Positions 719 through 34,655 are shown, counted from the first letter of the stretch. The stretch is DNA of 64,000 nucleotides from Oopsacas minuta (GCA_024704765.1 JAKMXF010000166.1:522743-586742), one strand, 5' to 3'. Numbers and translations: made by a program. Notes: generated by a model from the sequence alone, not told the origin.

Positions 719-3075
719 CTATTTATTGTTTTACCGTCGATTCACTTGATATCATTATAGATCATAATTATTTATCTTATCTATCTCTACACTGTTGGAT
801 TATTTCTGAAATCATTATTTCAATACTCTATATTTTGAACTATTCCTTCTTAAAATAATAAATGTATTTTATGGAATTATACAATATTTAGAGAATCAGA
901 ACCAAATACTTTTGGTATTTGTAAAATTCAGTAATATTTAATGATTTTTCGTAGCGCCATTTTAGTTCAGTTCCTAGCGCATTGGACATTAATTCATAGT
1001 TCTTTTGTCTAAACTTATTTGATTTTGTAAATTCTTTATACTAAGTTTCATTTTGCTTAATGAGTAGTAACACTAATTATGTTTGGTTATGTAACTGATA
1101 ATCTAATAAATTCCTTCAACCAAGCTAACCTGAGCATTTAGTTGTTAAACTTGATCATTATGATAGAGTGTTTATATAATATTGGCGCCTTACTTAGGGA
1201 TTAATAGCTCTCCCCCAATATTAAATACACACGTGGTATTTTATAGAGACATCCAGATTATCTCGCTCCGTGACCATCATATAACTCACAACTTGGTAGA
1301 GCAATGTCTACTTAATTCATTGAACTCAATACATTTCACAATTCAAACTACAAAGCACAAAGGTAGTTATTTAGCATAATTACTTCCTTCCATGACAATC
1401 ATAACCACTTAGAGAGTAAGCTATATTTTGATAGTTTAACTGCTAATAAGCACATGATTCGATACATGTTTAATGTTTGAATCCTTTTTAAATTTGACAT
1501 AATTCAATCATTATATTCACAGGTTTTTAGCAATGGATTAAAGGGAAACATCTTTCCTTATGTTGAATAGATTTAAATTGCACCAACTTTACTATGTATG
1601 TATAGGATATGGTGGTTTCTATCTTTTTCAATGTTGGAAATGTAAAATTCTTTGGATCGGTGATAGGTCACCTTTATTCTGAGGAATATGGTTAATGGAT
1701 GGCCTCCACTTAAGGTTCCAATTTTCCCTGTGGCACTTTTTAAATGATGAAGAGCTGAATTTTTTTGTTTGGAGAGATAAGATATATTTTGTGATTATCA
1801 TGATCAATGTAGATTGTAGAGATAATTTATTTGATAATTTTGTGATATTAAAGTTTTGAAATCGCTTAAGTTATAATTGAGATTATTCGAGCATTTCTAT
1901 ATTTCTGCATTGAAACGTCAAACTGCATTTAATTAATTAAAAACAGTGGAACCTGGTGGAATTTATACGCGGCCGCCAAAGCAAGCACAAATGATAACTT
2001 CAAATGTTTAATATTAATCAATATTATCTTATCTGATAAGGATCAGTTTGTTGGATATGTTTCATTTTGCACACCCCCACCCCAACAAAGTGAATTGGTT
2101 ACCTCCCCAATCTCTCCATAACTATCATTAAATTGATAGCATACTAAATGATAGTAGATATTAGTAAGGGTATATCATGTCAATAGACTTCATATTGAGT
2201 GAACTAAATGCTCAGGAAAAGATTTTATAGGGGATGGTCATAATCCTTACTAATCTACTATATTTAGTATGATATCAATTCAATGACAGTCATGGGAGAC
2301 ATTGAGAGATGAGGATGGGCAAAAATGAAACATAATCAGACATAATTAAGATTAATGTGAAAATATACATTTTAAGTTATTTATTTGTGCATGTTTTAGT
2401 GTCCACGTATCAAAATCAACCCGGTTTCACCATCAAGTAATTTCCACCATTCAGTCAGACCCTTGAACCTACATAATCCGCACACTTTGTAATCCTGATT
2501 TTCCTGATACCTTAACAGAAGTTTGAATTAACAAATATTAACAAGTATGTAGGTACCTTGATAATCCGACATTTTTCCACATAAAGAGTATTAGATTTTG
2601 TGTAAATACACAATTCTTTTATGTCTAGAAGTGCTTGTCATATATATGTAATCACTATTTTATCTTTAAACAAAAGCACTATTCACAAGAAATTCTTATA
2701 GATAGAGTGGGAAGTATATTTTATTATAGTCAGAATTGATGGAATAATATTCCCATAATTACCATAGATTACTTTAAGTTCCTATGTCACCACCATGTGA
2801 TCAGATAATTTCTATTACTCATTTTAGCTCTATTGCTTACGTGAATCAGTTTTATATGATGCATTTGAAAGAATGTACTAGTGATAATTATCTTCTCAAG
2901 TGTATAATATTTTGGGGGAGCATCTCTAAATTGTAATCGAATCATTATTTTCGCCTGTTCCGCAACAATTCAATTACAATCACCTTTGTCGAATTTTAAG
3001 TTTGCAGCTATTCCAGTTCCTCAACACTTCAATCAACCTGGCATGACCTCAAAAAACATTGAGTTTTATTACATA

Positions 3076-3460
3076 CTAGCGCGCTTCGCTTGCTCGCGCT
3101 ACGCAGTTGCGAACACTTTGTGTCCACACTCGGGCCTACGGCCCTCGAGCACATAAACTCATAATCTTAACCGTCACAAACATGATACTGCAATAATCTT
3201 AAGATCTGCTTACTTTATGTCCACAAAAGTGAACCAATATTTATGAAATGTTGTTTACAATATTTGGACTCAGCATACTCAATTACCCCAGCATAACCAT
3301 TGAAAGCATGTTCCTACCTCAATTTTGAAATTTATTTACTTTATATTCATAAAAACAACAATAAAATACATAAGAGAAACTTGAAAATGTGAACTTCGGA
3401 CTCAGCGTACTGTGTTACCCCTGCGTAGCCGTTTAGAGCAAGCCAGTATGTACATTTTAA
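3076..3460 (-). mobile_element. Non-autonomous Helitron, 3' portion
   Basis: The minus strand ends in hairpin AGCGCG-AGCAAGCGAAG-CGCGCT with CTAG|T at 3079-3076. The body aligns by eye with 21766-22050 and 33020-33160. Confidence 0.75.
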
Positions 3461-3598
3461 TAAATATTGACAATATTCATGGCGAACAGGTTCCAATGCT
3501 TAATCAGGGTGATTTAGGAAAACTTTAGCCAAGCTGTCATGGCGTTCTTCCGACATACATTAATTTCTGATAAAATTAGCTATCTCTAGAAATATACT

Positions 3599-4015
3599 AT
3601 GGATAATGTTACGAACTTTTCTGCTGAGCTCAAAGATACAAATTTGACAATTTCCTCAAACAAATTTCCTTTCAATCTATATCTTGCCAAGAACAATCCT
3701 CAAAATCTCTCTAAGAATTCTAAATATTCGGATAATTCAGGTTTTACTAGTTTAGTGAGCAAATTGGAAGATTTCTTACCCAAAATTGCTAATGCGAATG
3801 AAGAACTTCTTTCTCTCTCAAAAGATGAAGTAGATATTGAACAAGTCGAGGACCAAGATCAGATTATCGAAATGAATCTACAACTCTATGAAGATAGTTC
3901 TGATAGTGATAGTAGCGGCACACAAGATGATTTGACGGCATTAAATACAGAAATATCTCCTGAACATATTCAAAAGCCCCTGATTATTGAAGAAGAGAAG
4001 ACCACAAACAATTAA
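3599..4015 (+). CDS. NOPCHAP1: NOP protein chaperone 1 (C12orf45/DUF4598-like)
   Basis: LVSKLEDFLPKIANANEEL..DIEQVED..IIEMNLQLYE matches the DUF4598 core (FLPQMARANEKL..NIEN..IQMDVALFE). Single exon, 138 aa. Confidence 0.75.
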   Translation: MDNVTNFSAELKDTNLTISSNKFPFNLYLAKNNPQNLSKNSKYSDNSGFTSLVSKLEDFLPKIANANEELLSLSKDEVDIEQVEDQDQIIEMNLQLYEDSSDSDSSGTQDDLTALNTEISPEHIQKPLIIEEEKTTNN

Positions 4016-5282
4016 AGTATAATTTATCATTTATTTAGAACATTTTAATATTTCGTAATTAAATTCGTACTATCATAACTTAATGATTATTTCATATCGA
4101 GATTAGCATATCGTACATCACAATTGCAAGCCTGTAACACCCAGTCTTTTGCCTGCTGTACATGGCCTACCGGTTATTATGCAAAAAGATAATGGTTATA
4201 TTGCTACATTCCAACCTGAGTAAATAAATAAGGGGGAGGGAGCTACAAATTTAGCTTGACATCTCGGGACATAGCATAATATTAATGTTTTCAATTTATG
4301 TTTTTGCCAAGATTATGCGGGTTATTAGCCTCGACACATATGCCTGGCATTCACGAGTTTGAAACTGTCTTGAAATGGGTATTTTTTTTCTATCTTCATA
4401 CCCGCAATTGTTTGTATACATCACACCATGTTGTAGCTTTGAGTTTATGCTCTACCCTAAGAAATCGATCTATTTCTCCTTTATTGTCATGATTACCCTG
4501 CAAATATGAAGATTTCTAATTACTTGTAAAACGTTATAATTATGTAACTTTGTAATGACTAATTATTCAACAAGGTGAATAGATAAAAGGCTATTTATTG
4601 CATAAATCATAACTGATTACTGAAGGTCATTATGTGTGTTTGATAATATGTAAGTCAGCAAATTCTCAATATGGTATTGTCTTTAACTATTCTATAGCAC
4701 ATGTGAATGTTTAGGAGCATTTTTCATAATTCCAAGATAAGTAAGTTTGCTCATTAAAGATAAGATTCCTCGTGTTCTTGTACCAGAGTTGTAATTTCCG
4801 GCTCAACCATAATCCAGAAATATATTCTACATGGATAGCGCTAGAGAGGCTAGAACTCCTGGGAAACAGCTAAAGTAGTTTGAAATTTGTTTCTACAGGA
4901 ATCCTGTTGAAAAAAATATTGTTTCATAAAGGTTTGTATCAGGGCCGTATGAAGCATCCCATACTTTCCCCCCGCCTCCAAAAAAGGCCTATAAATATGC
5001 CACAACCTGGAAGAATGTAGACCAAAAACCAGATTCTTTAATATTTTCTTATGATTCATCATGCCATTTATTTATGTAATCTCTAACAGTTGTTCCCTAA
5101 AGGACGGGATGAGATGTTGGCGAATATTCTTAGTCGATATGACTTCGGTACAAATTTTGTTAACATTGCATACATCCCAAGTGGCCAACATTTTGTAGTA
5201 ATATCTTGTACGAAATTTCAAAATTCTAATTATTCTTGCAAATTATGCTAATTTTACACTCAATGTTGGGTTGCGGTCATAT

Positions 5283-5375
5283 TTTTCATAGAAACTATTA
5301 TCATTACTTGCTATGCTTGGCAATAACCTTAAAACTGGTGTGATGACCAGCATATAGAGAGTAATTGGTTGGCTC
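5283..5375. repeat. Dispersed repeat, copy 1 (copy 2 at about 13138-13232)
   Basis: Shared TTTTCATAGAAACTATTATC.TTACTTG..TAT..TTG.CAATAA.CC.TAAAA..GGT..G..GAGTAATT. Family unknown. Confidence 0.6.
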
Positions 5376-6346
5376 TATACTTTGTAAATGCTCGTTTCCT
5401 TTTTTCTAACTATTTTACAGTTTACCTGTTATTAAATTCGAACCCTAACCTTAAATTATGACTTTGATGTTTTCACAATTAGCTACTAAATTAGTTCCAT
5501 TAATTACAAAGGCTCATTTAGCAGTTCATGCAGTAGACCCACTGACAAAATTTTGACTTTGGATTAGTCAATTACAAATTAAACAATTCAAGTAGATGAA
5601 GTTCGAAATAGCAGCAAATATTTAAACATTTTCAGACGATAAACTATTTGTAGACATGTCTAATTTGGTAGTTTATAATTACATTCCTCAGTTGAATCTT
5701 TAAAAAATTGGCACGATTGAACATTGGAAGCATTTCCCAAAATTATTTTGGCTCTATGCTCTGATCGGATTAGCAAGGGCCTACTCTAGTAGTCATCTGG
5801 AGGGACCCCACAACCATCTAGCTTCCCTGATTTGTATACTACACATACGTTTTGGGGTGTAAAATTGCACCTGGGAATATGAAATTCTAAATTTTCCCAC
5901 ATTTGTGGCGATTAATCATACCCTCACTGATGAACCAAAATCGCTTAATTCGAAAAATTCGTGTATTTTAATTTTAATCAAATCTACTTTCTAATTTTCA
6001 TTGTTTGTAAATTACTTTAACGAAATTCATTTGATCAACTCATTTTGGTGGTGGTACTGGCTTTGTTCACAACTTTTTAGTGATCATATTTTCCACCTTT
6101 TCTCAACGGCTAGTATGGGTGATTGGGCAGCCAACATTTAATTTATATCAGCATGCTTATCATATGATTACCAGTATTTATTAAATTTATACTCCAAAAC
6201 TTTTTGGCGATTTGACACTAACGAGTTAGCATTGTTTATTTGGCAGAAATATTGGTCTGAGGTCTGAGCTGCATTCCTAATTCGTCGATATTTGTACTTC
6301 ATTAGTGTAATAATTTTGTGTATAGATATTCTGCCTTCTAGCCTTC

Positions 6347-8164
6347 ATGTCACTTTTACCGCATACCCCAATGAATGTAAGTTTGGCAGCTGACATAACA
6401 GGTCAGTATGTCGCACTCTATTCAAAACATTCCAACATTAAAATATGGAACTCTTCAAATGGGAAGAAATTTATAGAACTCCAAGTAAAGGCGAAGAAAG
6501 GGTCTTACTCGGTTGTCAGTTGGAGCATACGAGATTTGTATATTCGTAATTCTAAGAATATTATTTGGTTGTCGGCAGTTTCTGAATTTAGTGATGAACT
6601 TAGTCATAAGATTTTAGCTTACGGAACCACAAGTGGCTGTGTTGGACTGATGTATGCTTTAATTAATAGAGAAATAGTATCCAGTGACTCGGTACATTCT
6701 TCTTGTATTCAGGATGTTGTTTGGAATAAAAATTGCTCTCAATTATACTCTAGTGCAGATGATAAGACCATTGTAGAATGGACAATCTCTGAGGATGGAT
6801 TTACACCGGGTAGGCGTATTCAAGCATGGAAGAAGTCAGTAGGGAAATTAGCATTAAGTTGTGATGGGAATTTTCTGGTAGCAGCAAGTACTCGTATTCG
6901 CATTTGGGATATTCAGAATGAAGTTGTAGTACGTAAACTCACTGGACACACAAGTCAGGTAAATTGTTTAGAATTGATACATAATGGAGATGGTAGCATT
7001 AGCCATGTTATTTCTGTTGGAGAAGATGAGAGAATGATATCAGTTCAGAGAGTACAACTAGAAAATTCTTTTCATCACATCTCAACTCTTCGCTCTCCTC
7101 ACCATCCCATTTCAATGCACATATCTGAATACAATACTGTATTTATTGTAGCGTCTAACGGCATTGTGTATATGTACGAGCTTCCGTTTGATATTGAGCC
7201 TTCTAAGCCGATAAATCATGTTTGGAGTCTGCAAATATCGGATATTAGTCAGAGTAACGGTGCGGAGAAATCTCTTCTAATGCCAATTATGTCTGTGTTC
7301 TGTTTGAAGGAGGAAGGTAATCTTCTAGTCATGTATGGAAATTTGGTCAGGCCTATATTCGAGAAGATTGCAATCGATCTGAGTCAGAAGAGAATGAACT
7401 TAGAACGGTGTTCAAAACAGAAAAGCTCATTGAATGTAGATATCATTACAGAAGTAAAGTCAAGCAGTAATACAGCTGTTCCCATACAATTAATGTCTTC
7501 CCATCTTTCCAAAAAGGTTAAGAGAAAGAGACCAGCTGATGACGAAACTTCATCAGAACAAGTTAGTGACGTATCTTTAGGAGAACTTGTATCAGAGAGA
7601 GAAGAAAATTCTAAGAAAGATCCTGAAGCTCCACGCTCGATAGCTACTGGTTCTCTTGTCCATATGCTTTGTCAATCTCTACAATCTGACGACTCTGACC
7701 TCTTCAACCAAGTCATTTCTGTCACTTTGGGTAAAACAATACAAAATACTGTCAAATCTCTTCCTATGAAATATGTGCTACCTTTCATAGTAAAGGTTAT
7801 GTCAATCATGCACACCACTCCATACCGTGGTCCCAGTCTGATGAAATGGATTAGGCCTTGTCTAACCCTGCACACAGCTTATCTACTCACAGTCCCCGAT
7901 CTTACTGACAGACTAGGAATGTTATATGAATTGTTAGACTCTAGGGCAGCTAATTATGACAAGTTATGTCAGCTGAAGGGAAAACTAGATCTACTAGCTA
8001 ATACTAACCGTAATGCAACACCACCTACTCGGCAATATTCTCCAATTAAGCCTAGACTAGTGTTTGAAGATAATGACGACTCTTCTAGCGAAGCAGACCT
8101 CTCAGAATCCAATAGACAACAGAACAATTCAAGAGACGAATCTGCAGATGAGCTAATGACATAG
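6347..8164 (+). CDS. WDR43: WD repeat-containing protein 43 (Utp5, SSU processome)
   Basis: N-terminal WD40 repeats and a C-terminal Utp12-like domain (SLVHMLCQSLQSDD..TVKSLP..LMKWIRPCLTLHTAYL..PDL..RLGMLYELLDSR), followed by an acidic tail. Single exon, 605 aa. Confidence 0.9.
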   Translation: MSLLPHTPMNVSLAADITGQYVALYSKHSNIKIWNSSNGKKFIELQVKAKKGSYSVVSWSIRDLYIRNSKNIIWLSAVSEFSDELSHKILAYGTTSGCVGLMYALINREIVSSDSVHSSCIQDVVWNKNCSQLYSSADDKTIVEWTISEDGFTPGRRIQAWKKSVGKLALSCDGNFLVAASTRIRIWDIQNEVVVRKLTGHTSQVNCLELIHNGDGSISHVISVGEDERMISVQRVQLENSFHHISTLRSPHHPISMHISEYNTVFIVASNGIVYMYELPFDIEPSKPINHVWSLQISDISQSNGAEKSLLMPIMSVFCLKEEGNLLVMYGNLVRPIFEKIAIDLSQKRMNLERCSKQKSSLNVDIITEVKSSSNTAVPIQLMSSHLSKKVKRKRPADDETSSEQVSDVSLGELVSEREENSKKDPEAPRSIATGSLVHMLCQSLQSDDSDLFNQVISVTLGKTIQNTVKSLPMKYVLPFIVKVMSIMHTTPYRGPSLMKWIRPCLTLHTAYLLTVPDLTDRLGMLYELLDSRAANYDKLCQLKGKLDLLANTNRNATPPTRQYSPIKPRLVFEDNDDSSSEADLSESNRQQNNSRDESADELMT

Positions 8165-20199: not shown

Positions 20200-23073
20200 A
20201 TGTCTCTAGCTTTTGATGAGTACGGAACTCCCTTCATCATCATGAAGGACCAAGAGTCCAAATCTCGCCTCTCCGGTATAGAAGCGGTAAGATCTCACAT
20301 CGTAGCAGCAAAAGCAGTCTCGCAGACACTTCGGACTTCTCTCGGACCCAGAGGCATGGACAAGATGATGGTTAATCCAGACGGCGACGTCACAATAACA
20401 AACGACGGAGCAACTATCCTCACCATGATGGATGTGACACATCAGATAGCTAAGCTGATGGTAGAGCTGTCTAAGTCTCAAGATGACGAGATAGGTGACG
20501 GGACTACAGGAGTAGTGGTACTAGCAGGAGCTCTGTTAGAATATGCAGAAGGACTGCTGGACAAAGGTTATTATTCTTAATATTTAATTCATTAACATAT
20601 TATAGTATTATTCAATAGGAATACATCCCATTCGGATAGCTGATGGATTTGAAATGGCAATGCAGATTTCTCTACGTCATCTCGATAAGATAGCGGAGAA
20701 GTTCCAGGTAGACAAGGACGAGAAAGAGAAGCTAATCAAGGTTGCCATGACTACGCTTGGCTCCAAGATAGTCAGTAAGTGTCACAGACAGATGGCAGAG
20801 ATAGCTGTGGAGGCTGTATTGTCTGTGGCTGACTTTGAAAGGAGAGATGTAGATTTTGAATTGATTAAGGTACAATCTTTCAAACTAAGCTGATCAATTT
20901 TCTATTAATAATAATCTGATACTAGGTGACGAGTAAAGAGGGCGGAAAACTTGAAGAGTCCCAGCTGTACAAGGGTGTGCTAATTGACAAAGACTTCAGC
21001 CATCCTCAGATGCCTAAGAAAGTTAAAGACGCTAAGCTAGCTATCTTAACTTGTCCATTCGAGCCTCCTAAGCCTAAGACTAAACATAAGCTAGACGTAG
21101 CCAGTGTAGAAGATTTCCAAAAGCTGAGAGAGTATGAGAAGAAGAAGTTTGAGGAGATGGTATGTAAATTATAATTATTATACGTAATACTTGTAATTAG
21201 GATACGAATTATAGACTATGCTCTATCATAGGAAATTTATACCCCCGACGTGCCAGTGAAAGCTATCTGGCATTTACCGGGTGATCCATATAATTCTGTG
21301 TTTTATGATCTTTATACTTATTATAATCCCGGTTAAATTGGCTGAGGTTACGGGCTTACGCTCGGAGCCAAAAGAGCCGGACATAACATACATCTACTCT
21401 TTCATAAGATTATATATTTATAATTTATAAGAATATTAAGCCATTTCCAAGTTCTATTGTGATTCTTTGCATCAAATTCAAACTTATAAGATTAACTAGC
21501 ATTCTATACATAATTATGGTAATGGCGTGCTTAATAATTTTTGAACTAGGGATAAAATAATTAATAAATATATTTACAAAGGGAAGTCTATTTGTTTTGA
21601 TAATATAAAAATGCACCATTTTTATATTATCAAACAATTATACTTCCCTTTGTAAATAAATTACAAGAAATTTCGGTTCGTCATATACATGGTTTGGCGT
21701 TCGCAAGGGCGTTGCACCATATTAACATGAATGTATTTGGAGTCTATCAAGGTATATAATAGACGCTAGCGCGCTTCGCTTGCTCGCACTACGCGGTTGC
21801 GAACATTTCGTGTCCGCACTCGAGCCTACGGCCCTCGAGTACATAAACTCATAATCTTAACCGTAGCAAACATGATACTGCCATAATCATTAAATCTGCT
21901 TACCTTATGTCCACAAAAGTGAACAAATATTTATGAAATATTGTTGCAATATCATATTTGGACTCAGCATGTTCGATTACCCCAGCATAACCATTGAAAG
22001 CATGAATCTATTACTAATTTGAAATTTGCTTACTTTATGTACCTAAAAGTAAACAAATATTCATAATATGTTGTTTACAAATATCATATATGTTTTTCTA
22101 TATGAGAGCGTGACAGACACACAGACACAAATTGAGATTTAATAATATAGATTTGGAGCAACTTCGGATTTAGAGACCTTTTTGTCCTGCCAGAATGAGT
22201 GTAGTCAAATCCGAAGTTTACTGTAATTAACTATTTTATCATTAGTCCAAAAATTATTAAGCGCGCCACTGGCTTATATATATAGAAAGCTATAGATTCA
22301 CGTATTACACATAGGTAAGGCAAGTGAAGGAAGCAGATGCTACTGTTGTAATATGTCAGTGGGGATTTGACGATGAAGCTAATCACCTTCTCCTTCAGAA
22401 CGAGCTACCTGCTGTCAGATGGGTAGGTGGACCAGAGATAGAGCTTATAGCTATTGCTACTGGAGGTAGAATTGTACCTAGATTCTCTGAACTGACACCT
22501 GATAAGCTTGGTAAGGCTGGAATGGTAAGAGAACTATATTTCGGTACTACTAAGGACAGAATGCTAGTAATTGAGGAGTGTCAGAACACTAAGGCAGTGA
22601 CTATATTCATCAGAGGTGGTAACAAGATGATTATTGAAGAAGCTAAGAGAAGTATGCATGATGCTCTATGTGTGGTTAGAAATCTGGTGAAGGACAATAG
22701 GATAGTGTATGGCGGTGGTGCTTGTGAAATCGCTTGCTCTATTGCTGTAGCAGAAGCAGCAGATAATGTATCTAGCCTAGAACAGTATGCTGTAAGGGCA
22801 TTTGCAGATGCTCTGGACTCTATTCCCATGGCGCTAGCTGAAAACTCTGGTTACAATCCTATTGAGTCTGTAGCTGAGGTAAAATCTAAACAGCTGGAGA
22901 AGGGACTATCTTCACTAGGAATAGATTGTTTGGGTTATGGTACTAACGATATGAAAGAAATGAATATTATTGAAACGTTGATTGGTAAGAAGCAACAGCT
23001 GAGTTTAGCTACACAGCTGGTGAGGATGATTCTTAAGATTGATGACATCAGAATTTCAGGCCCGCCTATGTGA
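20200..23073 (+). CDS. CCT5: T-complex protein 1 subunit epsilon, 4 exons (20200-20566, 20619-20869, 20926-21159, 22315-23073; 536 aa)
   Basis: Motifs [27 protein letters not shown] and [17 protein letters not shown] introns of 52, 56 and 1155 bp restore one continuous 1611-nt frame. Confidence 0.95.
21766..22151 (-). mobile_element. Complete 386-bp non-autonomous Helitron in CCT5 intron 3
   Basis: The minus strand starts A|TCTATATTATTAAATCTCAATT with a GTCT-type microsatellite and ends in hairpin plus CTAG at 21769-21766. No TSD. Confidence 0.8.
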
Positions 23074-23382: not shown

Positions 23383-23805
23383 TTTTTTTTTTACTGAATT
23401 CAGTTTGGAATTGGACTAAGTAGGCTGGTGCATGACCAGCTATCATTATTATTTATTTCAATTTCACCCATTTTTGTATAAACACGAATATTGTAAATAT
23501 TACACTAAAACGCAAATAATCTGTAAATTTATTTCAGGGCTGGGGTTGGCTAACCGAATTAAGGGCGTAGTTATGCTAAAACAAGGCACAAAGCTCAAGG
23601 ATACGTCCACCGAAGCGCTAGTATTACAATAAAACAATGGAAATCTCTTGACTGCTCAAATCTTTGACGAAAATTCACACCTATGACAGGAGTATGACGT
23701 GCTGCTGGTCTACGGCCAATATACTTGTTGATAATATAAGATATAGCTATATAGCTGATATAAAATCACAGGTGTGATGTCCATCCATATACCAAACATA
23801 AATTA

Positions 23806-23905
23806 TCTTTATTATTGAATCTCAATTGTTGTTTGTCTGTCTGTCTGTTCGACGATTGTCAAGGAAGGATTGATGGTATGCTAGTATGAAATTGAATTTG
23901 GCAAT
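23806..23905 (+). mobile_element. Helitron 5' fragment
   Basis: A|TCTTTATTATTGAATCTCAATTG + (GTCT)n + TGTCAAGGAAGGAT, as in the copies at 32752, 33700 and 34915. Confidence 0.65.
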
Positions 23906-24918: not shown

Positions 24919-26346
24919 ATGAGATTATCTCATTGCCGATGTGTTCTGTTTGTTTTTAGAAATGTACCTACATTTCATATTAAAAAGGCTCATAATTCGC
25001 TTTGGTCTTACGTAGAATTCAAATTACACGACTACCTCAAATCCGATCTCCACAAAGAGGCTTTGCTATTATTCAACAGATTGAGGTTAGAATGCACCCC
25101 TATATCTCCTCCCTTACTCCAGCTTATAGTGGTACTCTACCTGGAAAAGGGTCCACAGTCTGCTGGCCTGTCTCATGTCCTATCCTACATGCGCTCCACC
25201 TCTCTACACCCCTCCTCAGGACTAGCACCTATTTTGATAAATAGAGCACTTATAAAGAGAGATCACGTAAGTCTCAAATATACGCTGGACTCCTGTTTTC
25301 AAAATAAAGTGTCTGTACGACCTTCTAGTTTCACACAAGCCATACAACACTTGTTGACTAATGTAAATGACTATGAGTGTGTATACCAGTATGTATGTGC
25401 TTATCTTGATGCTGGGAGTAATGTTGAAGAGCAATTACTCTCGAGTATTTGTGAAGAACATCTCTTCTCTCAATCACCTGCACTTGTACAGAGCATCATG
25501 TGTATCCTTACTCACTACAAGAAACAAGGTAAGTATATATGTAACAAACAAGTGTTTGAATCGTTAGCTAATAGTCTCAAACTGACTAACGAATTCACTC
25601 ACGTCAAGAGGACATATCTTATCAATGACAAATGTCAGGCATGTGGTAGCTGTATAACACAGACTACCTTCTCCCCTGATACATATTCTTCATTGGAACA
25701 AGAGGTAAGAGAAGAAATCCAGCAAATGTACATTAATCAGAGAGTAATCAACTCCCCGGAAATGTACAGGATTGACAATCAAGTAGATAAGTTAATATTA
25801 TCTATTTCTAATACCAGTGACAGAGCTATGGCAGTAGTTGTAGATTGTCTATCAGCAGCAACAGCCATTGATACAGGCTGGTCTGAAACTGTTTCTGAGA
25901 GAATTAATTGTAACACTCTCCTACAGCTTGTGGAGTCTATAGAAAGAGATTTTAATCCTTCTTGTGTAGTCCTGCTAATTAGGAGAGTCTTGCTTTGGCG
26001 TAACGAGAATGAGATAGAGATGGAGGAGCTGAGAGCACGAGCATCAGTTATCGTGATAAACAAGAACTCTATTCACTCCCTGTTCTCTCTCCTGATAGCT
26101 TTGAGACTGAAGTCACGTGCTCTGCTACTGACAGCTGATACATTCAATGATTTTAAGCTTAACTTTTCTCCTGGCCTTTATTCGGCTATAACTAGCTGGT
26201 TCTTACGTCACTCTCTTCGTTTTGACATAACAGGCATTGAACCAATTATATACAAGTCTAGTCAAACTCTCTGGCAGTTAGATTTCAGCTCGGAGGGTCT
26301 ACATGTCCCTATGCGTAGTAATGAATGGATTTGTGCCAAGAAATAA
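24919..26346 (+). CDS. PRORP: PRORP/MRPP3-like protein (mitochondrial protein-only RNase P family), probably catalytically impaired
   Basis: Basic/hydrophobic transit-like N-terminus from ATG 24919, helical PPR-like region, and Zn ligands CQAC/LHVP/WIC. NYN motifs VVVD and TADTFNDFK. About 47 aa align without gaps to human PRORP as remembered (EMEE..AS..DD..ITRD.MRDHK). Confidence 0.8.
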   Translation: MRLSHCRCVLFVFRNVPTFHIKKAHNSLWSYVEFKLHDYLKSDLHKEALLLFNRLRLECTPISPPLLQLIVVLYLEKGPQSAGLSHVLSYMRSTSLHPSSGLAPILINRALIKRDHVSLKYTLDSCFQNKVSVRPSSFTQAIQHLLTNVNDYECVYQYVCAYLDAGSNVEEQLLSSICEEHLFSQSPALVQSIMCILTHYKKQGKYICNKQVFESLANSLKLTNEFTHVKRTYLINDKCQACGSCITQTTFSPDTYSSLEQEVREEIQQMYINQRVINSPEMYRIDNQVDKLILSISNTSDRAMAVVVDCLSAATAIDTGWSETVSERINCNTLLQLVESIERDFNPSCVVLLIRRVLLWRNENEIEMEELRARASVIVINKNSIHSLFSLLIALRLKSRALLLTADTFNDFKLNFSPGLYSAITSWFLRHSLRFDITGIEPIIYKSSQTLWQLDFSSEGLHVPMRSNEWICAKK

Positions 26347-27945
26347 TATTACTATAGTATCAGAAGAAAGCGGCTACGTCTCTTACTCTTTTGTTGTTTC
26401 TACTTAGGATGTCAACGACCATGTCCTGATTGTATAATGTATATTATTATATTAAATGAATGCTATAATTATACGCATTGATTAAACTGATTTCAACTCA
26501 TTATTAATTCCTGTCAATAATTTGAATATTCAATTAGGAAATCAATATTAAACACTTAACTGACTTAAGCACAGTCTGTAGCACTTAAATTAAATTGTTT
26601 ATGAGCTATATGAGAGCAGGAGACCCAACAAGTTATATATTGAATTCATTTAGCAATACGTCAGTTCTTCTCAACCTTTATTCCCCCGCGGACCTATGTT
26701 CAGTTTTAAGGGGTCTGCAGACTACTGTAATACGTAATTTCTTAATTATATTAACTCTTCTATTGTGCGTATTCCATGTTTTACATTTTATTAATCGTTT
26801 TAAAAATACAGTATTAGAGTGACAACAATCATTTCGCTGTTGTCTAAGTGCACTCAATACTTACGATAGGGGTATGAAGGTTCAAATTTTGTAAATATTG
26901 AAATTACTAGGCTCGGGGCTTTATCCACCACAAGTAAAACTCAATCCCCAAATTCATATATCTTATATTGAGTAGCTGCAACATGGTTCTGATGATGACC
27001 TGTTTCGAATATGATGTATGTACGTATGATAAGTAGGCTCTAACTTACGAGCTTAGTTTGTTCTTTTCAGATTTGGTGTTGTAGGTTGTAATTCGTAAAT
27101 TTCAGGGAAATTGGTTTTTATCATACTTGCTTGTCCTAGCATTGTATTTCATAATATGCAGAAATAGAATTCTGCATATTACCACCACCAATAGACTTAC
27201 ATTTGTTTTGATATTTAATAACATGCATCTATTGGTAATTCCAACCGTAATGCTGGTATTTTCGCGCGTCTCATTTATTCTGATGTGAAATTTTCACACC
27301 TAGCACATTTTGGTGATTTATAATAATACTCTCACCTCTTTCAATGTAACAATAACACATGCTAGAGATAAGGTTAGACAGACACTTTGCCCGCCCTGCG
27401 TAGGCATGGAGTCAAAGCCCTTGGCTTAGGTGAGAAAATTTGATTAATTAAATACAAATTAAATACAGACAGTATTCTAATGTCAAAAACTGGGAATAAT
27501 ACCAGCGGAACGCCGGTATTTTCCCAGTTTGAAAATTGAATCTATGAATTAGCCCAGTTTCAGTGACAAATATCAACAATAAATTTTTTAATAAAATTCT
27601 AACACAATGAAAATAAAATTTGGGCAAAGTTCCTAGGGAAATTAAGATAAAAGTCCCAATTAGGGCTAGTAGGAAAAAATCGGGCCGATTTCATTTTACA
27701 TTTCTTTGTAATACATAGCAGAGACGAAGTATCTGCATTTTCTATTAGGTGAACACTGCCGGGAAAATGTGTGATTTTATGACGCCAAATGGTGATAAAA
27801 TCTCGTTTTTGGTGAGGGAATTGGTTAAAAAGAAGTAAAATTTTAGTATTCCTTTTCATTACGAGCTTAACACTCCGACCGTAATCGGTTAATGATTGAA
27901 AGGGCTAGAAGATGAACAATAAAAGGCTCAAGTCCAAGTCAGGAC

Positions 27946-28089
27946 TTAATACGAATCTCCGGATAAGACGAAAAAAATTCCATAAATATCAGGTGCCTAC
28001 AATTGGAATTACTCAGGTTAATACTAACTCCGGATAAGGCAAACAAAATTTGACCTTCCGTTGGTGTTCGTATTAACAAGGATCCACTG
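27946..28089. mobile_element. pogo/Tigger-type MITE remnant (right TIR retained)
   Basis: Ends GTTCGTATTAACAAGGATCCACTG|TA. Internal TCCGGATAAG repeats are related to the 40079/41370 family. Confidence 0.55.
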
Positions 28090-28093
28090 TATG

Positions 28094-28305
28094 TTTACAA
28101 AGTATGAATCATCTATTATTGCATAGGATTAAGGTGACCTGTAAGTGATTTCGAAAAAAATTGAAATGTTGTTGGAATTTTGACAGATACCTTCGCATAG
28201 CAACGAAGAAATGTGTCAAAATTCCAGCAACACTTCAATTTTTTTCGAAATCACTTACAGGTCACCTTAACCCTATGCAATAATAGATGATTCATACTTT
28301 GTAAA
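28094..28305. repeat. Long inverted repeat: two 92-bp arms (3 mismatches) around a 28-nt loop
   Basis: 28094-28185 is the reverse complement of 28214-28305. The inner part, TTAA|GGTGACC..GGTCACC|TTAA (28133-28266), looks like a Kolobok-type MITE. Confidence 0.9.
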
Positions 28306-28977
28306 GCATAATTTCAAACGGGCTCGAAATATCTCCATAGTCCAAAAAAGGATAACACGGAATTAATTGATCACATATCATAAATGTGAGAAGCCATACG
28401 TATGCTTTACTACCCTGTTGATATGTATTGGTAATACATTTCTAGTTTGTAACTTACACAGTTACTGTGCTAAGCATTAGTCACCTCAAAACTATAATAC
28501 AGTCATTCTATGAATTTCATGCTATACATGGTTATAAAGGAATTGAGCCAGCAATGAGTTATGACGAAAATCCCCACATAAATACACTTTTCAAAAGATT
28601 TCCTTGCATTTAAACACAAAAAGTAAGGAAAAATTCCAAAGTAAAACAGAATTATGGCAGATCAAATTAGGCACATACGAATGTTAGCGTGATGAGAGTG
28701 TCACGTCCGTGAATGTACGAGTCCGTGATTGCTATTATCAAAACACGTATATTGATATTTAGGAGTTACGAAATAATCATACATCTGTGCAATTTTATAG
28801 TTAAGCACCTTCCAAGTACTTCATAGATATTCTTTTAAGAAGGGACGTATCTGCTGAATGACAACTTGGCTACAGTGGATAAGAATCGACGAGGAATAAA
28901 GATGTACCTAAATACAAAGTGCAACATAATATAACAACTATATATACACAAATAATCATTATATATATTCCGTTAGT

Positions 28978-30638
28978 TTATAAACATTTTCTAAGAATAA
29001 TTTCAGGACCGTATTCATCATAGCTATATTTAGTAAGACAAATCTTATCAAAAGCATCAGAAGAAGCTAACATAGATCCTCCAATCCATGCACTGTATTT
29101 CCTATCAGGAGCTGCTCTTATCTTTATTGATTTGATATTAGGAGTGAGTACAGAAAGCTCAGTGTATAATCTCTCTTCTATTCCAGGGAACATCGTATTA
29201 CCTCCTGCTAACACTATATTAGTGTATAAATGGTGATGAATATCTGTATCACTCTTCAGGATTGATTTGTTAATATCAACATGGATACCATCGTGTACTG
29301 ATCCAATGAGGGAAGGATTGAATAAAGCTTCCGGACATCTTAAGCACTCCTCCCTGATAGCAATCTCTTGTCCATCTGGTAGCGCGTACATCACAGGCAG
29401 AAGCTCTTCTGTGGTAAAACTCTAATCAAAATAACAGAATTAAGACGTCATCATATTTCCTGTTATTTCAGAATACCATAACAGATAATAGAAACGAGCA
29501 TCAAGCAAATTTCCAGCAAATGCATTTAATTGCTATTCACTACAAATTCGAAAAAACTTTCTGTAATCAGTACCACATCCACATGTTATACAATAATCAC
29601 ATCATTTGATATGGTGGTCACGAAGAAGTTTCAACTAGGAACTGGCTAAGTAACTCAATAGCCAATTAGTGAATTTTAATATGTTGCAATAATATATAAT
29701 TGGTAAATTTCGACCCGAATAAATGTATTATAACTATTATCGATATTTAACTATGTGGACAATCTATATCTACCAACCAGAGGGGCCAGATGGATACAAT
29801 TCAAAATCCAAATCCATCCAAACTCAATGGATTTATGGATTTTGGCCGGGCCGTGGAGAATATTAACCTGGGGAGCGATCACGTATTGATGCAATTTCAA
29901 TGATATTCTATTTTACCTTACCTTATCTTTATGATTGTTTGGATCATTCTCCACTCTCATTCTGCTGACAAATGCCAGTTTTTCCTTGATGTCATTGACA
30001 ATATTAGCGTTACGCTCATATCGCATATTGTACCCTGTATCAGTTAGTAGTTTAGCGAGATATTCAGCTAGTACTCGTCCTCCGATTTCAAATAGTACAA
30101 CACTGTGCTTCAGCACATGTCCCTTGTATATGGGTACTATGTGTGATGAGTCCTTACCTGAATCTACTACAAGTCCTGTGGTGTAACCTTTAGAGTATAA
30201 AGAGAGGACCTGATTATTAGATATGTATAAAGCCGGCGTGTTGAATGTCTCAAACATGATCTGTAACATCTTCTCACGATACACCTTAGGATTTAGAGGA
30301 GTCTCAGTGAGTAAGATAGGGTGTTCTTCTGGAGCAACACGTAACTCGTTATAGAATGTGTGATTCCATAACTTCTCCATGTCATCCCAGTTTGTTACAA
30401 TTCCATGTTCAATCGGGTACTTGAGGCTTAGAATACCTCTCTTGTTTATAGCTTCTTGTCCTGCAAAGGAGGACATCTGTTCCATCCCCACAAATAGAAC
30501 CCGCATTCTGGGCCTACCAATAGTGGAGGGAAATTCAGCACGAGGCGTGTATTCTCCTGCAAAACCTGCTTTACACGTGTCGGAACCATTGTCTACCACG
30601 ATTGGAGTTGAATTATACTCATCTAACTTATCTCCCAT
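28978..30638 (-). CDS. Divergent actin, 2 exons (30638-29922, 29421-28978; 386 aa)
   Basis: Motifs [51 protein letters not shown] and a C-terminal RKCL. A phase-0 GT-AG intron at 29921-29422 joins the two ORFs in frame. Confidence 0.9.
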
Positions 30639-32751
30639 TTCTACATCTATTACACTGGTCAACGTTTACCACTATGGAATTTCTTCTTATCTGAATCCGA
30701 ACTTTTCCTAGCAATATTTCTATACTGATTCCGAAATGAAATCCAATTTACTCCAACACGTCACAATTTGATAATATTCAACATGAAAAACTACAAAATG
30801 GATAATATTTGTAAACATTTTCCTTTATACGAAAGGATTTATCCACAACTTGTATGAATATTCAAATTCTAATATATTTGTAATCCATTGTAACGAGTGT
30901 AGCTCTGTGTAGACCAAACTGGTTATTCGGAGGCCAAAAATAAACTTTAATGATATTTTGTTGTCTCTAAATGTGAAATTATAGATTTCCTCTGCCAAAA
31001 AATGACCAGTTTCACCTGAATAAACCTCTTACCAGTTTAAAATAAAATATGAACCTGTTATTATTCAAAATTTACAACAGTTTCCCATAAGTACCTCAGT
31101 ATTCGGTAAAGATTTCTGATATTTTAGCAATTTTGTCATTTTCAAGTCACATGTCATCAAATTGCGAAGTGATGGAGCCACACGGGTTCTATATTCGGAA
31201 TCAGCATGGTTGGTAACACAACATCAAAACTCTATTCAACACAGAAGGAAATCAGTGTTGAAAAGTGTAATCAATATAACCCAGTCGAATCCACAAGTGT
31301 AAGTTAGTGTTGTCGTTGGAGGGTTTTAACGCGAACAAATTGTTATATAAACATATTTGATACTGTTGGGTGTCTAATTTTATGTTCTACCTTCTACAAC
31401 ATATCCAAAATCCGCAAAACTCGCTATGGAGACACTTTTTTGAGGAATTTGTAAAGTCATCAGATATCACTAGAGAAGGTGTAAAAATTGGAACTTCTAT
31501 GATTGAAGTCCGATCACATTATTATAGTTTTTTTCGGAAAGAAATATGTGAAAAATAGCAAGGGAGTTAACAAGGCGCGGGGACCGTTACAGTAAATTCA
31601 AGTTAAGAGATTATTTAGAGAGCTTATATGTACATAACTAGATTCAATTTGTCGAGTGACGTCAAACAAGGGTTCACTCGATAGGGTTGGATAGGACCAG
31701 AGAAATTTCCCCAAAGCGGATTTTTTATATGTTATAGAGCATAAAATTCTACGCCCAACAGCATCACATATGTTTATGTAACAATTTGTTCATGGAAAGG
31801 CCTTTTTCGGCTCCCACGACTCCACTAGCTAAAAGTAAGTTTAACTTAGAATTATTAGGAAACTAATTGTTTTTGCTTGGTGGGGAAAGAGACTGATTTA
31901 TCATATGATTAATCATATTTTACACTAAATCATGCTAGAGAATTTGTTTTAACTGCTAGTAAGGGGTAATGAGTATGTAGATTTTATATTGACATTTTCA
32001 AATCTATATTTACAATATCTATCATATTTTCACACCTTTTACATATATTTCAAATTGATGCTAGATATTCGTTTTAAAGTTAGACAGGGGATAATGTAGG
32101 ATAATTATTCCGAATTTTACCCATAGGATTTGAGGATAGAATATGAAATTCATTAGGAGACGAATAATATTGAATATCCTGAAATATTTCTCGGATCCAG
32201 GAGCCCAAAATCAGTCGGGTCCGGTGCATTGCGGCATTTACATGGGGGTCAGGGGGTTGTGCCCCCCATGAAAATAATTACATAGCCCTGAGTGCACTAC
32301 AAGTCTGTCGGCTGGACCTTATTAAAAATAATTTTAACGAAAAAGAGCAAATGTTATTATTTATATGTGAAGGGCAATATGACTGCGCATATCATATTAC
32401 GTAAATTATTTATAAGATAAGGTGGTTATCGCTTATAAGAACATCCTTGCGTAAAGCAACAATATTTACTGATAATTATAAGTCTTATTTGCAAACCCAC
32501 TGTAGTTAAATTTATGACTGTGTAAGGATGATATTCGTACTATTATTGTTCAAACATGCTCTGCCCCTATGGCCTTTTCTGTTACAAATCTCCCCTCCCT
32601 TTTCCAAGAACATACGAGTATGTTATGTTGCTATTGGTTTGTACATTATGATGGCCGCGTGTAAATTATATTACTTTAATTAACCTGGAAATGTAGGATA
32701 TATTATATGATTATAATCTATACTATCAAAACGTAATTAATCTGTATGTAT

Positions 32752-33160
32752 ATATATATTATTAAATCTCAATTGCTGTCTGTTTGTTTGTTTGTTTGTT
32801 TGTTTGTCCGTTGTCAAGGAAAGGATTTACGGTATGCAATTTTGAAATTGTAGCATAACTATGTATTTATTGTGTTTATCAAGGAAGTAAATAGAATTCA
32901 ATAAAACTTCACTAAATATATCGAACATGCTGAATCCGATTTTCACACTTTTGGATTAATCATATGTAAATTTATTGTTGTTTTTATGATTATAAAGTAA
33001 ACAAATTAGCCAAATCTCAAAATATACGTACAGGCTTGCTCTAAACGGCTACCCAGGGGTAAGTAAGTACGCTGAATCTGAATTTCGCATTTCAAGTTTC
33101 TCTTATGTTAATTCTTTTGTTATTTTATGAATATAAAGTAAACAAATTATTGAAATATTA
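32752..33160 (+). mobile_element. Helitron copy lacking the 3' end, with (TTTG)n and an internal duplicated segment
   Basis: TATATTATTAAATCTCAATTGCTGTCTG(TTTG)n..GTCAAGGA. The segment ..TATAAAGTAAACAAATTA.. occurs twice. Confidence 0.7.
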
Positions 33161-33699
33161 ATGTATTAATTCAATTAATGAGCCTACCACATTATCGCAT
33201 CTCTTTACTCCCTGCATATATTATTTATATATTGTCATAGACTAGTACAGAAGAATCTCCCAAATAAGGGAATCCAAGAAGCATTAATTAGCTAGACTCA
33301 ACACTCCACTTTGGCAAATACCTCACTTCTTACTCTCATATTTTACAACTTTTTTCGTTAATTAAATGAATTATGTCCGAGTTAATGTAAGAAAAAAAAT
33401 TTGGACCAATCTTGCTTCTTACAGTATGATTACCCAACATCGAGGAATGTGTATTAATTTTAGGTTACACAATCATTAAAAATTTGAATTTTGTCTGGAG
33501 CTTAAAGAAATTATCGATTTATTCCTAATTCTACTGCAAATCAATCACAAGTTGGACGCCATTCCATCGTTTGTACAACTTTCGGAAGCATGGGCTTCCA
33601 GATTCTATAGTATTCTTTCAATGCATTTCGTTAGTCCGGGCAACATATTAATCCCGCTTAATCGGGTGTGTATATGATAGAGTAACAAGTGAAAGGAAA

Positions 33700-34047
33700 T
33701 CTATATTATTAAATTGCATTTTTGCCTGCTTGTCTGTCAGTCTGTCTGCTTGTTCGTCGTCAAGGAGAATATATACGAAATGCTATATTGATTTCAAATT
33801 TTCGCAATTTAAGTCGCATAAATATGCATTTATCATGTTTACCAAGAAAGTAAACAGAATTCGATAATTGACATCTTAAAATAATCATATGAACTTATAG
33901 ATAGGGATAATCAGGTACGCTGAATCCAAATTTTACATATAAGAATGTGTTCAATGTTTATTTTATGAATAATTCGAAGCATGAAGTGCCGAGTTTCGTG
34001 TGAACATGTTCGCAAGCCGCGCAGCACAGACAAGCGAAGGGCGCTCG
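33700..34047 (+). mobile_element. Complete 348-bp non-autonomous Helitron (CTCG end variant)
   Basis: A|TCTATATTATTAAATTGC ... TTCGCAAGCCGCG..CAAGCGAAGGGCGCTCG|T. Inserted between A and T with no TSD. Confidence 0.75.
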
Positions 34048-34154
34048 TATATTATAATACATAAGCCTTAAGGTTAAGATATAATCTTCCCAAATAGTTT
34101 ACAACTTCTATGTATTTATTACTATAGTACATGAGTTTTAATTGTGTGCCTTTT

Positions 34155-34655
34155 TCACTCATTCAATCCAAGCCATTTTTCTATCGATAGCGCTAATTTC
34201 TTAACTTCTTCCTGATTACAATGAATTCCATATTTTGTAAGCGGTAAAGGATATCCATTCTGTAGATTGAGCCTGATGATATACCCAGTGCCTGAGTAGC
34301 GAGATTTGTCTTCCTCGAGGGTAACAGATTCTACTTCATTCATAGATGCTGCCATATAGTCTAGATTACCGCCTAAAAGGTAGGAGAATAAAGTATCATG
34401 ATAAATTCGTATTTTATTATGTTTCTTTTCGAGCAAAACTTCATCAAATGAGTCAAATACCGTATAACCACAACAGAACCCCAACAGGACAACTGATGCT
34501 TTAAAATAGTAACTTTCTACCCAGAATGAAAAGTATACACCTATTGCCGCTCCGATGTAAAGCATAACCCAAGATGTCCAGGTAGCATCTCTCCTCAGCT
34601 GCAATAAGTCTGGAGTGAAAGATAACACACGCATGTATGGTTTTTTGGAGGACAT
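34155..34655 (-). CDS. CYBC1: Cytochrome b-245 chaperone 1 (EROS, C17orf62)
   Basis: YMRV..LQLRR..SW, two TM helices, and EEDKSRYSGTGY..L.L..G...PLT match CYBC1. Single exon, 166 aa. Confidence 0.85.
   Translation of the reverse strand: MSSKKPYMRVLSFTPDLLQLRRDATWTSWVMLYIGAAIGVYFSFWVESYYFKASVVLLGFCCGYTVFDSFDEVLLEKKHNKIRIYHDTLFSYLLGGNLDYMAASMNEVESVTLEEDKSRYSGTGYIIRLNLQNGYPLPLTKYGIHCNQEEVKKLALSIEKWLGLNE

Follow-up and report, generated by a model that had tools for sequence, protein, structure and literature searches.

Here we describe a glass-sponge gene, from Oopsacas minuta, whose product is predicted to keep the full-length fold of PRORP, the nuclease of animal mitochondrial RNase P, and which carries His-Ser where the enzyme has two catalytic aspartates. 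The gene lies on the plus strand of a 64,000-nucleotide stretch of DNA (GCA_024704765.1, JAKMXF010000166.1:522743-586742), which we call the window and whose first letter is position 1 for the coordinates below, and it runs from 24919 (ATG) to 26346 (stop included) as an intact open reading frame (ORF) of 475 codons with the stop as an extra codon. We consider it likely that this gene is an old PRORP paralogue whose product now serves as a non-cutting, (pre-)tRNA-binding pseudo-nuclease, probably in mitochondria. Pseudoenzyme evolution as such is common, and if this reading is true the protein would be the first tRNA-binding pseudo-nuclease of the PRORP family as well as a natural PRORP unable to cleave, of use in work on how the PPR and NYN domains recognize structurally eroded mitochondrial tRNAs; those of glass sponges share derived features with bilaterian ones, according to Haen et al. 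(2007) as cited in PMC4558845. PRORP has been treated as the single-copy signature gene of animal mitochondrial RNase P, and in surveys such as that of Pett and Lavrov (2015) any homologue passes for the enzyme. Now that one animal lineage is seen to hold two PRORP genes, one of them almost certainly no longer an RNase P, presence/absence surveys must check the catalytic pocket.

The catalytic pocket and the fold around it

The gene and the parts of its product on which the argument turns are the following.

24919..26346, plus strand: complete single-exon coding sequence of the PRORP paralogue with His-Ser at the Asp-Asp position (called gene, JAKMXF010000166.1, GCA_024704765.1)
24919..25008, plus strand: N-terminal segment of about 30 residues with presequence-like composition; predicted local distance difference test score (pLDDT) below 50
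25009..25581, plus strand: helical-repeat (PPR-type) domain, residues 31-221; pLDDT about 90 in both AlphaFold models
25600..25818, plus strand: central zinc-binding domain, first part with the CxxC, and linker helices, residues 228-300
25633-25635, 25642-25644, 26302-26304 and 26332-26334, plus strand: zinc ligands C239, C242, H462 and C472, respectively
25819..26211, plus strand: NYN (PIN-like) nuclease-fold domain with degenerate pocket, residues 301-431 (PF16953, Foldseek, VIA)
25843..25845, plus strand: D309 (GAT), equivalent of human D409 and AtPRORP1 D399; the sole pocket aspartate invariant in both clades
25879..25902, plus strand: about 8 residues (W321-R328) inserted in the His-Ser clade only, in the loop that follows strand beta1; missing from all canonical copies
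26074..26079, plus strand: H386-S387 (CAC TCC), replacing the catalytic Asp-Asp (human D478/D479, AtPRORP1 D474/D475); fixed in six species
26137..26139, plus strand: D407 (GAT), equivalent of human D499 and AtPRORP1 D493; kept in five of six orthologues, His in P0005
26212..26343, plus strand: central zinc-binding domain, second part, residues 432-475, with H462 and C472

Throughout, P0001 is the window protein, P0002-P0006 are its five His-Ser orthologues, and P0007-P0014 are canonical Asp-Asp PRORPs. No feature of PRORPs is more conserved than their pocket of four aspartates, by which the subtype is defined (2024 review, PMC10941002), and the window protein does not have this pocket: of D399, D474, D475 and D493 in AtPRORP1, or D409, D478, D479 and D499 in the human enzyme, the middle two are replaced. 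The register comes from phmmer against the human MRPP3 chains 4rou and 4xgl, where H386-S387 stands under D478-D479, D309 under D409 and D407 under D499, the aligned blocks being VVVDCLS under VVIDGLN, NSIHSLF under ISEDDPF and LTADTF under ITRDLM. These matches to PDB sequences are weak, with E about 0.4; hhalign, run between the His-Ser and the canonical glass-sponge clades, gives the identical register over 427 colinear columns (probability 99.9%, E 2e-33, 23% identity), and the canonical clade profile in turn matches human PRORP at E 5e-14, with its DSRDD placed on the human ISEDD, and AtPRORP1 at 2e-8. The CxxC region is the top-scoring stretch of the alignment to human PRORP. A first-pass annotation of the window had placed CAC TCC at 26074-26079 as His-Ser at human D478/D479 and had read VIDGLN as having become VVDCLS, and both statements are borne out, the former by phmmer, hhalign and translation and the latter by the first of the phmmer blocks. 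It had also described the equivalents of D409, D499 and D503 as kept, which stands for D309 in all six species, fails for D407 in P0005, and fails in five orthologues for D411, the D503 equivalent, which is acidic in O. minuta only and N or S elsewhere.

The rest of the pocket tells a similar story. The canonical glass-sponge clade is invariant at D317, the G and N that follow, D383, S, D386, D387, D407 and E411 (P0011 numbering), and of the pocket positions fixed there the His-Ser clade keeps D309 in 6/6 and D407 in 5/6. Position 383 varies among N, S, K and R in the His-Ser clade, and VVVDCLS (306-312) stands where canonical copies have VDGxN (VDGMN), the G of the DGxN motif having become C or S and its N having become Ser. 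Furthermore, the insertion W321-R328 bears two glutamates, E323 and E327, that are invariant in the His-Ser clade, in a segment with pLDDT below 50. The window protein is in these respects a homologue of an active enzyme without the conserved catalytic residues, as the term pseudoenzyme demands. In human PRORP the D479N and D499N mutants are inactive and D478N has very low residual activity (PMC4477676), and these effects, taken together with the conservation of the four-aspartate pocket, argue strongly that the canonical two-metal mechanism has been lost in the window protein, which by analogy with the human mutants would be inactive in cleavage.

The fold, as far as it can be predicted, has stayed. 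All four zinc ligands are invariant in 14/14 sequences from both clades, as the first-pass annotation had held for the window protein, and the split zinc domain is thus present. AlphaFold2 with an alignment of these 14 sequences, canonical PRORPs included, gives a mean pLDDT of 77.9, with about 90 in the PPR part and 70-88 in the NYN part, and it supersedes an earlier run with a 6-sequence alignment in which the NYN half was below 50. Against the PDB, the best 14 Foldseek hits of the model are all PRORP structures (7onu_E, E 3e-14), and VIA gives Z 22.9 to human MRPP3 4xgm (327 residues aligned, root-mean-square deviation (rmsd) 5.4), Z 21.2 to 7onu_E, the PRORP of the human mitochondrial RNase P-pre-tRNA complex (419 aligned, rmsd 7.8, residues 26-475), and Z 19.1 to AtPRORP1 (414 aligned, rmsd 6.1), so that the top matches for the NYN fold are PRORP structures throughout and reach residue 475. 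The single-sequence model in the ESM Atlas, which is independent of the alignment used here, likewise leads to PRORP clusters at TM 0.65. Pfam PPR models have no match to the window protein at E of 1 or better; the PPR domain is recognized by its colinearity with the canonical paralogue, whose profile matches designed PPR proteins, and by VIA, where residues 27-222 reach Z 11.6 to the AtPRORP1 PPR domain-tRNA complex 6lvr_A (189 aligned, rmsd 5.9) and Z 11-13 to designed PPR proteins, values that are typical of helical repeats generally and count only alongside the full-length PRORP match. The models indicate that the full-length PRORP fold is retained, with PPR domain, zinc hinge and NYN domain, and the structure-prediction check that the first-pass annotation had in mind comes out as a full-length match at Z 21-23 to human PRORP.

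A Pfam scan has PRORP (PF16953) as its sole family, at residues 238-467 with E 2e-7 and 31.2 bits, which is below the gathering cut-off of 39.1 bits and leaves the protein outside formal Pfam membership; its orthologues score 19.6-36.8 bits, and the canonical glass-sponge copies P0008 and P0007 score 63.9 and 78.2.

Is the His-Ser pair genuine? The five orthologues, found at 51-64% identity by a word search of 5.8 billion proteins, all retain H386, S387, D309 and the four zinc ligands, and their His and Ser codons vary synonymously across species (CAC/CAT; TCC/TCT/TCA). Contigs of the runs X1, X3 and X4, which come from one sample, span the gene with no difference listed at 26074-26079, and run X5, from a related organism, has differences nearby and none listed at the His-Ser codons. 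An assembly error at these codons, which the first-pass annotation had named as a way in which its reading could fall, is ruled out by the contigs of three runs and by the orthologues with their synonymous codon changes. The ORF, which that annotation had called intact, is so at 475 residues in the window and in six assemblies altogether, full-length in five of them and N-terminally truncated in P0006.

Two PRORP genes and their history

A search of the same genome for other PRORP copies with an intact Asp-Asp pair found one. This canonical PRORP, P0011, is on JAKMXF010000001.1, the window gene P0001 being on JAKMXF010000166.1 and both in GCA_024704765.1; it was reached by a word search with P0008, is called 'Mitochondrial ribonuclease P protein 3 isoform X2 [Oopsacas minuta]' by NCBI, and carries a precomputed PF16953 hit, above the Pfam cut-off for PRORP, and all pocket motifs (VDGMN, DSRDD, TND). 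An exhaustive profile search with the His-Ser clade among 1.84 billion representatives returned three clusters, namely the clade itself, P0007 and P0008, the last two canonical with VDGMN, DSRDD and TND...ELKND. Both types occur side by side in ERZ25069837 (P0002 His-Ser, P0008 canonical) and also in ERZ25072730 (P0004 and P0012) and ERZ25072740 (P0005 and P0014), in which two the contigs are similar in depth. Canonical copies are present in six other assemblies besides O. minuta, and the His-Ser type was seen, in the data searched, only in O. minuta and closely related assemblies, which we take to be glass sponges. With a canonical PRORP in O. minuta and both types in three more assemblies, the window gene is therefore an old paralogue and not the only RNase P nuclease of its lineage.

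The two genes also live at different addresses. The canonical locus has a DOCK9-like gene, PRORP, choline kinase genes and an EAP30 gene in O. minuta, ERZ25069837 and ERZ20067936, and in two other assemblies the canonical gene adjoins TANGO6 and RTP1 genes. The His-Ser locus has another neighbourhood, with a Cybc1/Eros gene downstream at the loci L001, L002, L003 and L005 and in the window (34158-34655, minus strand).

A branch with 100/100 support parts the 6 sequences of the His-Ser clade from the 8 of the Asp-Asp clade in a maximum-likelihood tree, and the species groupings are largely alike within both, one node conflicting with weak support. A long stem (1.49) leads to the His-Ser clade, and paths inside the two clades are of about equal length, that from O. 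minuta to ERZ25069837 being 0.62 in each. Two clades separated in this way, with largely similar species groupings, date the duplication, on the tree, to before the sampled species with both copies diverged. The exhaustive His-Ser profile search and the canonical word search yielded glass-sponge copies only and no outgroup PRORPs, which leaves the tree unrooted, and a His-Ser copy was not seen in the P0007 lineage (ERZ20067936), where absence is not established; the duplication can therefore not be placed before or after the split of that lineage.

Since that duplication the His-Ser gene has been maintained. Estimated by the Nei-Gojobori method, the ratio of nonsynonymous to synonymous divergence (dN/dS) is 0.18 for the His-Ser pair P0002-P0003 (dS 0.36) and 0.27 for P0004-P0005 (dS 0.64), and it is 0.19-0.25 for comparable canonical pairs (dS 0.64-1.2). 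Purifying selection acts as strongly on the His-Ser copy as on the canonical enzyme, and the dN/dS check proposed for the window gene, at 0.18-0.27, finds a constrained gene. It is kept by purifying selection, as a pseudoenzyme gene is and a pseudogene is not; a pseudogene is ruled out by dN/dS and the intact ORFs.

How, then, does this protein compare with what is known? PRORP/MRPP3 (KIAA0391; PDB 7onu, 4xgl; PF16953) is the catalytic subunit of animal mitochondrial RNase P, and the window protein is like it in having a PPR domain, a split zinc central domain (CxxC...H...C), an NYN domain and a presequence-like N-terminus, in matching it structurally at full length (Z 21-23, 327-419 residues) and in descending from the glass-sponge PRORP gene. 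It departs from it in the replacement of two pocket aspartates out of four, in an altered DGxN motif, in a D503 equivalent that varies and in an insertion of about 8 residues, and, unlike MRPP3, described as single-copy in animals (PMC4558845), the window gene coexists with a canonical copy. With the canonical glass-sponge PRORPs P0007-P0014 it shares nearly equal length (476-482 residues in canonical copies, 471-491 in the His-Ser type), colinearity, genomes, and a similar rate and dN/dS; however, identity is only 22-25%, the locus is different, and the canonical copies keep every pocket residue. Duplicated PRORPs are likewise kept side by side in plants and trypanosomes (AtPRORP1-3, TbPRORP1/2), but the paralogues described there are all active RNase P enzymes in different compartments, and none has a degenerate pocket (PMC10941002). 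A parallel in mode is offered by pseudonucleases that descend from active RNases, such as fungal Ssd1 (RNase II/Dis3L2), likewise a nuclease duplicate without catalytic carboxylates that has kept its fold, binds RNA and is under selection (PMC8097288, PMC8934651); its fold and pathway are unrelated, and the analogy is one of evolutionary mode only. As for glass sponges themselves, the animal survey of Pett and Lavrov (2015), which included Aphrocallistes vastus, found MRPP3 homologues in nearly all data sets, cited MRPP3 as single-copy in animals and did not discuss pocket residues (PMC4558845). A search of the literature for an inactive PRORP paralogue or for glass-sponge RNase P, with incomplete coverage of subscription journals, found nothing beyond that survey.

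A proposed non-cutting tRNA binder and its rivals

The scenario that we favor is the following. PRORP duplicated, one copy remaining a canonical metallonuclease (P0011 in O. minuta), and the other, in the window, diverged fast and lost the carboxylates of the two-metal site (D478/D479 to His-Ser), the GxN of DGxN becoming C/S-L-S and the D503 equivalent becoming variable in the same divergence, after which it has been under purifying selection no weaker than that on the enzyme. The PPR domain of active PRORPs binds the tRNA elbow, and the window protein, with PPR domain, zinc hinge and NYN scaffold kept, may by that token still dock on tRNA-shaped RNA, without cutting it by the PRORP mechanism. 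As a presumed RNA binder, its candidate roles would be those of a non-catalytic ligand of (pre-)tRNA or tRNA-like RNA acting as chaperone, protector, competitor or partner of the active enzyme. The location is probably mitochondrial, as judged from N-terminal composition only: the N-terminus of the window protein is net positive and has no acidic residue before position 33, with 32-39% identity; every full-length orthologue starts with 30 or so residues of net positive charge and no acidic residue, and the canonical sister copy has an N-terminus of that kind. Presequences are poorly conserved, as is this N-terminus, and its amphipathicity is no better than that of shuffled sequence. A non-catalytic paralogue was one of the two alternatives left by the first-pass annotation, and it is supported by P0011, by the co-occurrence of both types, by the retained fold and by purifying selection, the inactivity itself being read from the sequence.

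Several points weigh against it, and most of them speak for a protein that is still a nuclease, with a rebuilt site made of D309, H386, D/H407 and E323/E327 that would use a softer metal (Mn2+/Zn2+) or acid-base chemistry and cut tRNA precursors or some other class of RNA, with a new specificity. H386, S387, E323 and E327 are invariant in six species despite synonymous codon variation, and such strict invariance of His-Ser shows, at the level of sequence, that the pocket still matters for something. His, Ser and the Asp or His at 407 can bind metals, the lone change at that position being from Asp to His, also a metal ligand, and together with E323/E327 they could form such a site. Moreover, loops after strands form the active-site face in PIN/NYN folds, and the insertion, placed from predicted secondary structure and general knowledge of the PIN fold, follows strand beta1 and would lie on that face. 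Against the non-cutting reading stand also the partial dependence of the AlphaFold2 model on the canonical PRORPs in its alignment, and the search of sequencing runs, in which none is on record as RNA; the contigs over the region run unbroken through intergenic DNA, so the runs look like DNA runs and are uninformative on transcription. However, the auxiliary positions (the DGxN asparagine, D383, E411) are lost or variable in the His-Ser clade, D407 varies as well, prediction confidence for the insertion is low, and no PIN/NYN nuclease is known to us to function when His/Ser replaces the two aspartates. A re-tooled paralogue whose NYN scaffold bears a metal site newly built from His and carboxylates, acting as a second mitochondrial RNA endonuclease with another metal need or specificity, would extend the chemistry known for NYN domains; we are aware of no report of an active site of this type in PIN/NYN nucleases, and we hold this variant to be rather improbable. 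Catalytic residues can migrate, as has been pointed out for pseudoenzymes (PMC10211241), but the conservative D479N change already kills human PRORP (PMC4477676), and a nuclease with a rebuilt site is in our view unlikely.

Alternatively, a non-catalytic PRORP-derived protein could act outside mitochondria, for instance by binding RNA in the nucleus or cytosol, with only a historical tie to mitochondrial tRNA metabolism. The presequence call is composition-based only, with amphipathicity not above shuffled controls, and plant PRORP paralogues are divided between organelles and nucleus (PMC10941002), but the N-termini of the full-length orthologues are net positive, acid-free and poorly conserved, with a similar canonical sister, and we regard an extra-mitochondrial role as quite improbable. 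Decay is much harder to defend: a young pseudogene with an open ORF, or an assembly or annotation artefact, would agree with the Pfam score under the cut-off and with the lack of any RNA run among those found, but full-length intact ORFs in five genomes, dS above 2 between the most distant pairs, dN/dS of 0.12-0.27, conserved microsynteny and reads that agree with the assembly make it very improbable indeed. The second alternative of the first-pass annotation, that the window gene is the lineage's only PRORP and that glass sponges process mitochondrial tRNA 5' ends otherwise, could appeal to the window, which holds no second PRORP, and to the mitochondrial DNA of O. minuta, whose 22 tRNA genes, all on one strand, need 5' processing (PMC4520895). 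It has lost its basis now that the same assembly is seen to encode the ordinary enzyme P0011, canonical in every pocket residue and able to do that processing, and that six other assemblies have canonical copies; we give it almost no credence.

Gene context and further observations

The N-terminal limit of the window gene is well set, since the mechanical ORF opens at GTG 24904 with a stop codon just before it, and an N-terminal extension is therefore impossible without splicing. An Rfam search of the whole window returned zero RNA families. Upstream, at 20200-23073 on the plus strand, is an ordinary-looking CCT/TCP-1 chaperonin gene (Cpn60_TCP1) with at least 2 exons. Downstream, the Cybc1/Eros gene follows the His-Ser PRORP at 0.2-4 kb in three relatives and at about 7.8 kb in O. 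minuta, where the window copy is 78% identical to that of L001; a divergent actin-like gene (28978-30662, minus strand) stands between the two, and the interval 26347-34157 has therefore gained genes in the O. minuta lineage.

Two of the relatives' loci deserve a word. P0004 is found on two ERZ25072730 contigs (L002 and L003; 1.69 Mb and 0.67 Mb), whose coding sequences differ by 1 nucleotide and whose flanks are about 99% identical and interrupted where repeats have been rearranged; a single locus represented by two haplotigs is the likeliest reading, rather than a second duplication. An 11.3-kb contig of ERZ26869290 (ctg279390, L006) has a 375-residue His-Ser copy at 2426-3553 (plus strand), without the first 100 or so codons, and within 1160-7820 four near-identical partial copies in both orientations, at 1160-1492 (plus), 1796-2320 (minus), 6092-6886 (minus) and 7104-7820 (plus), which reflect either amplification in place, with inversions, or an error in assembling a short contig. 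Finally, summed contig depth in the window is very high over 23727-23853 and rises to about 100,000 at 23805-23849, at a (TGTC)n-type simple repeat common to many loci.

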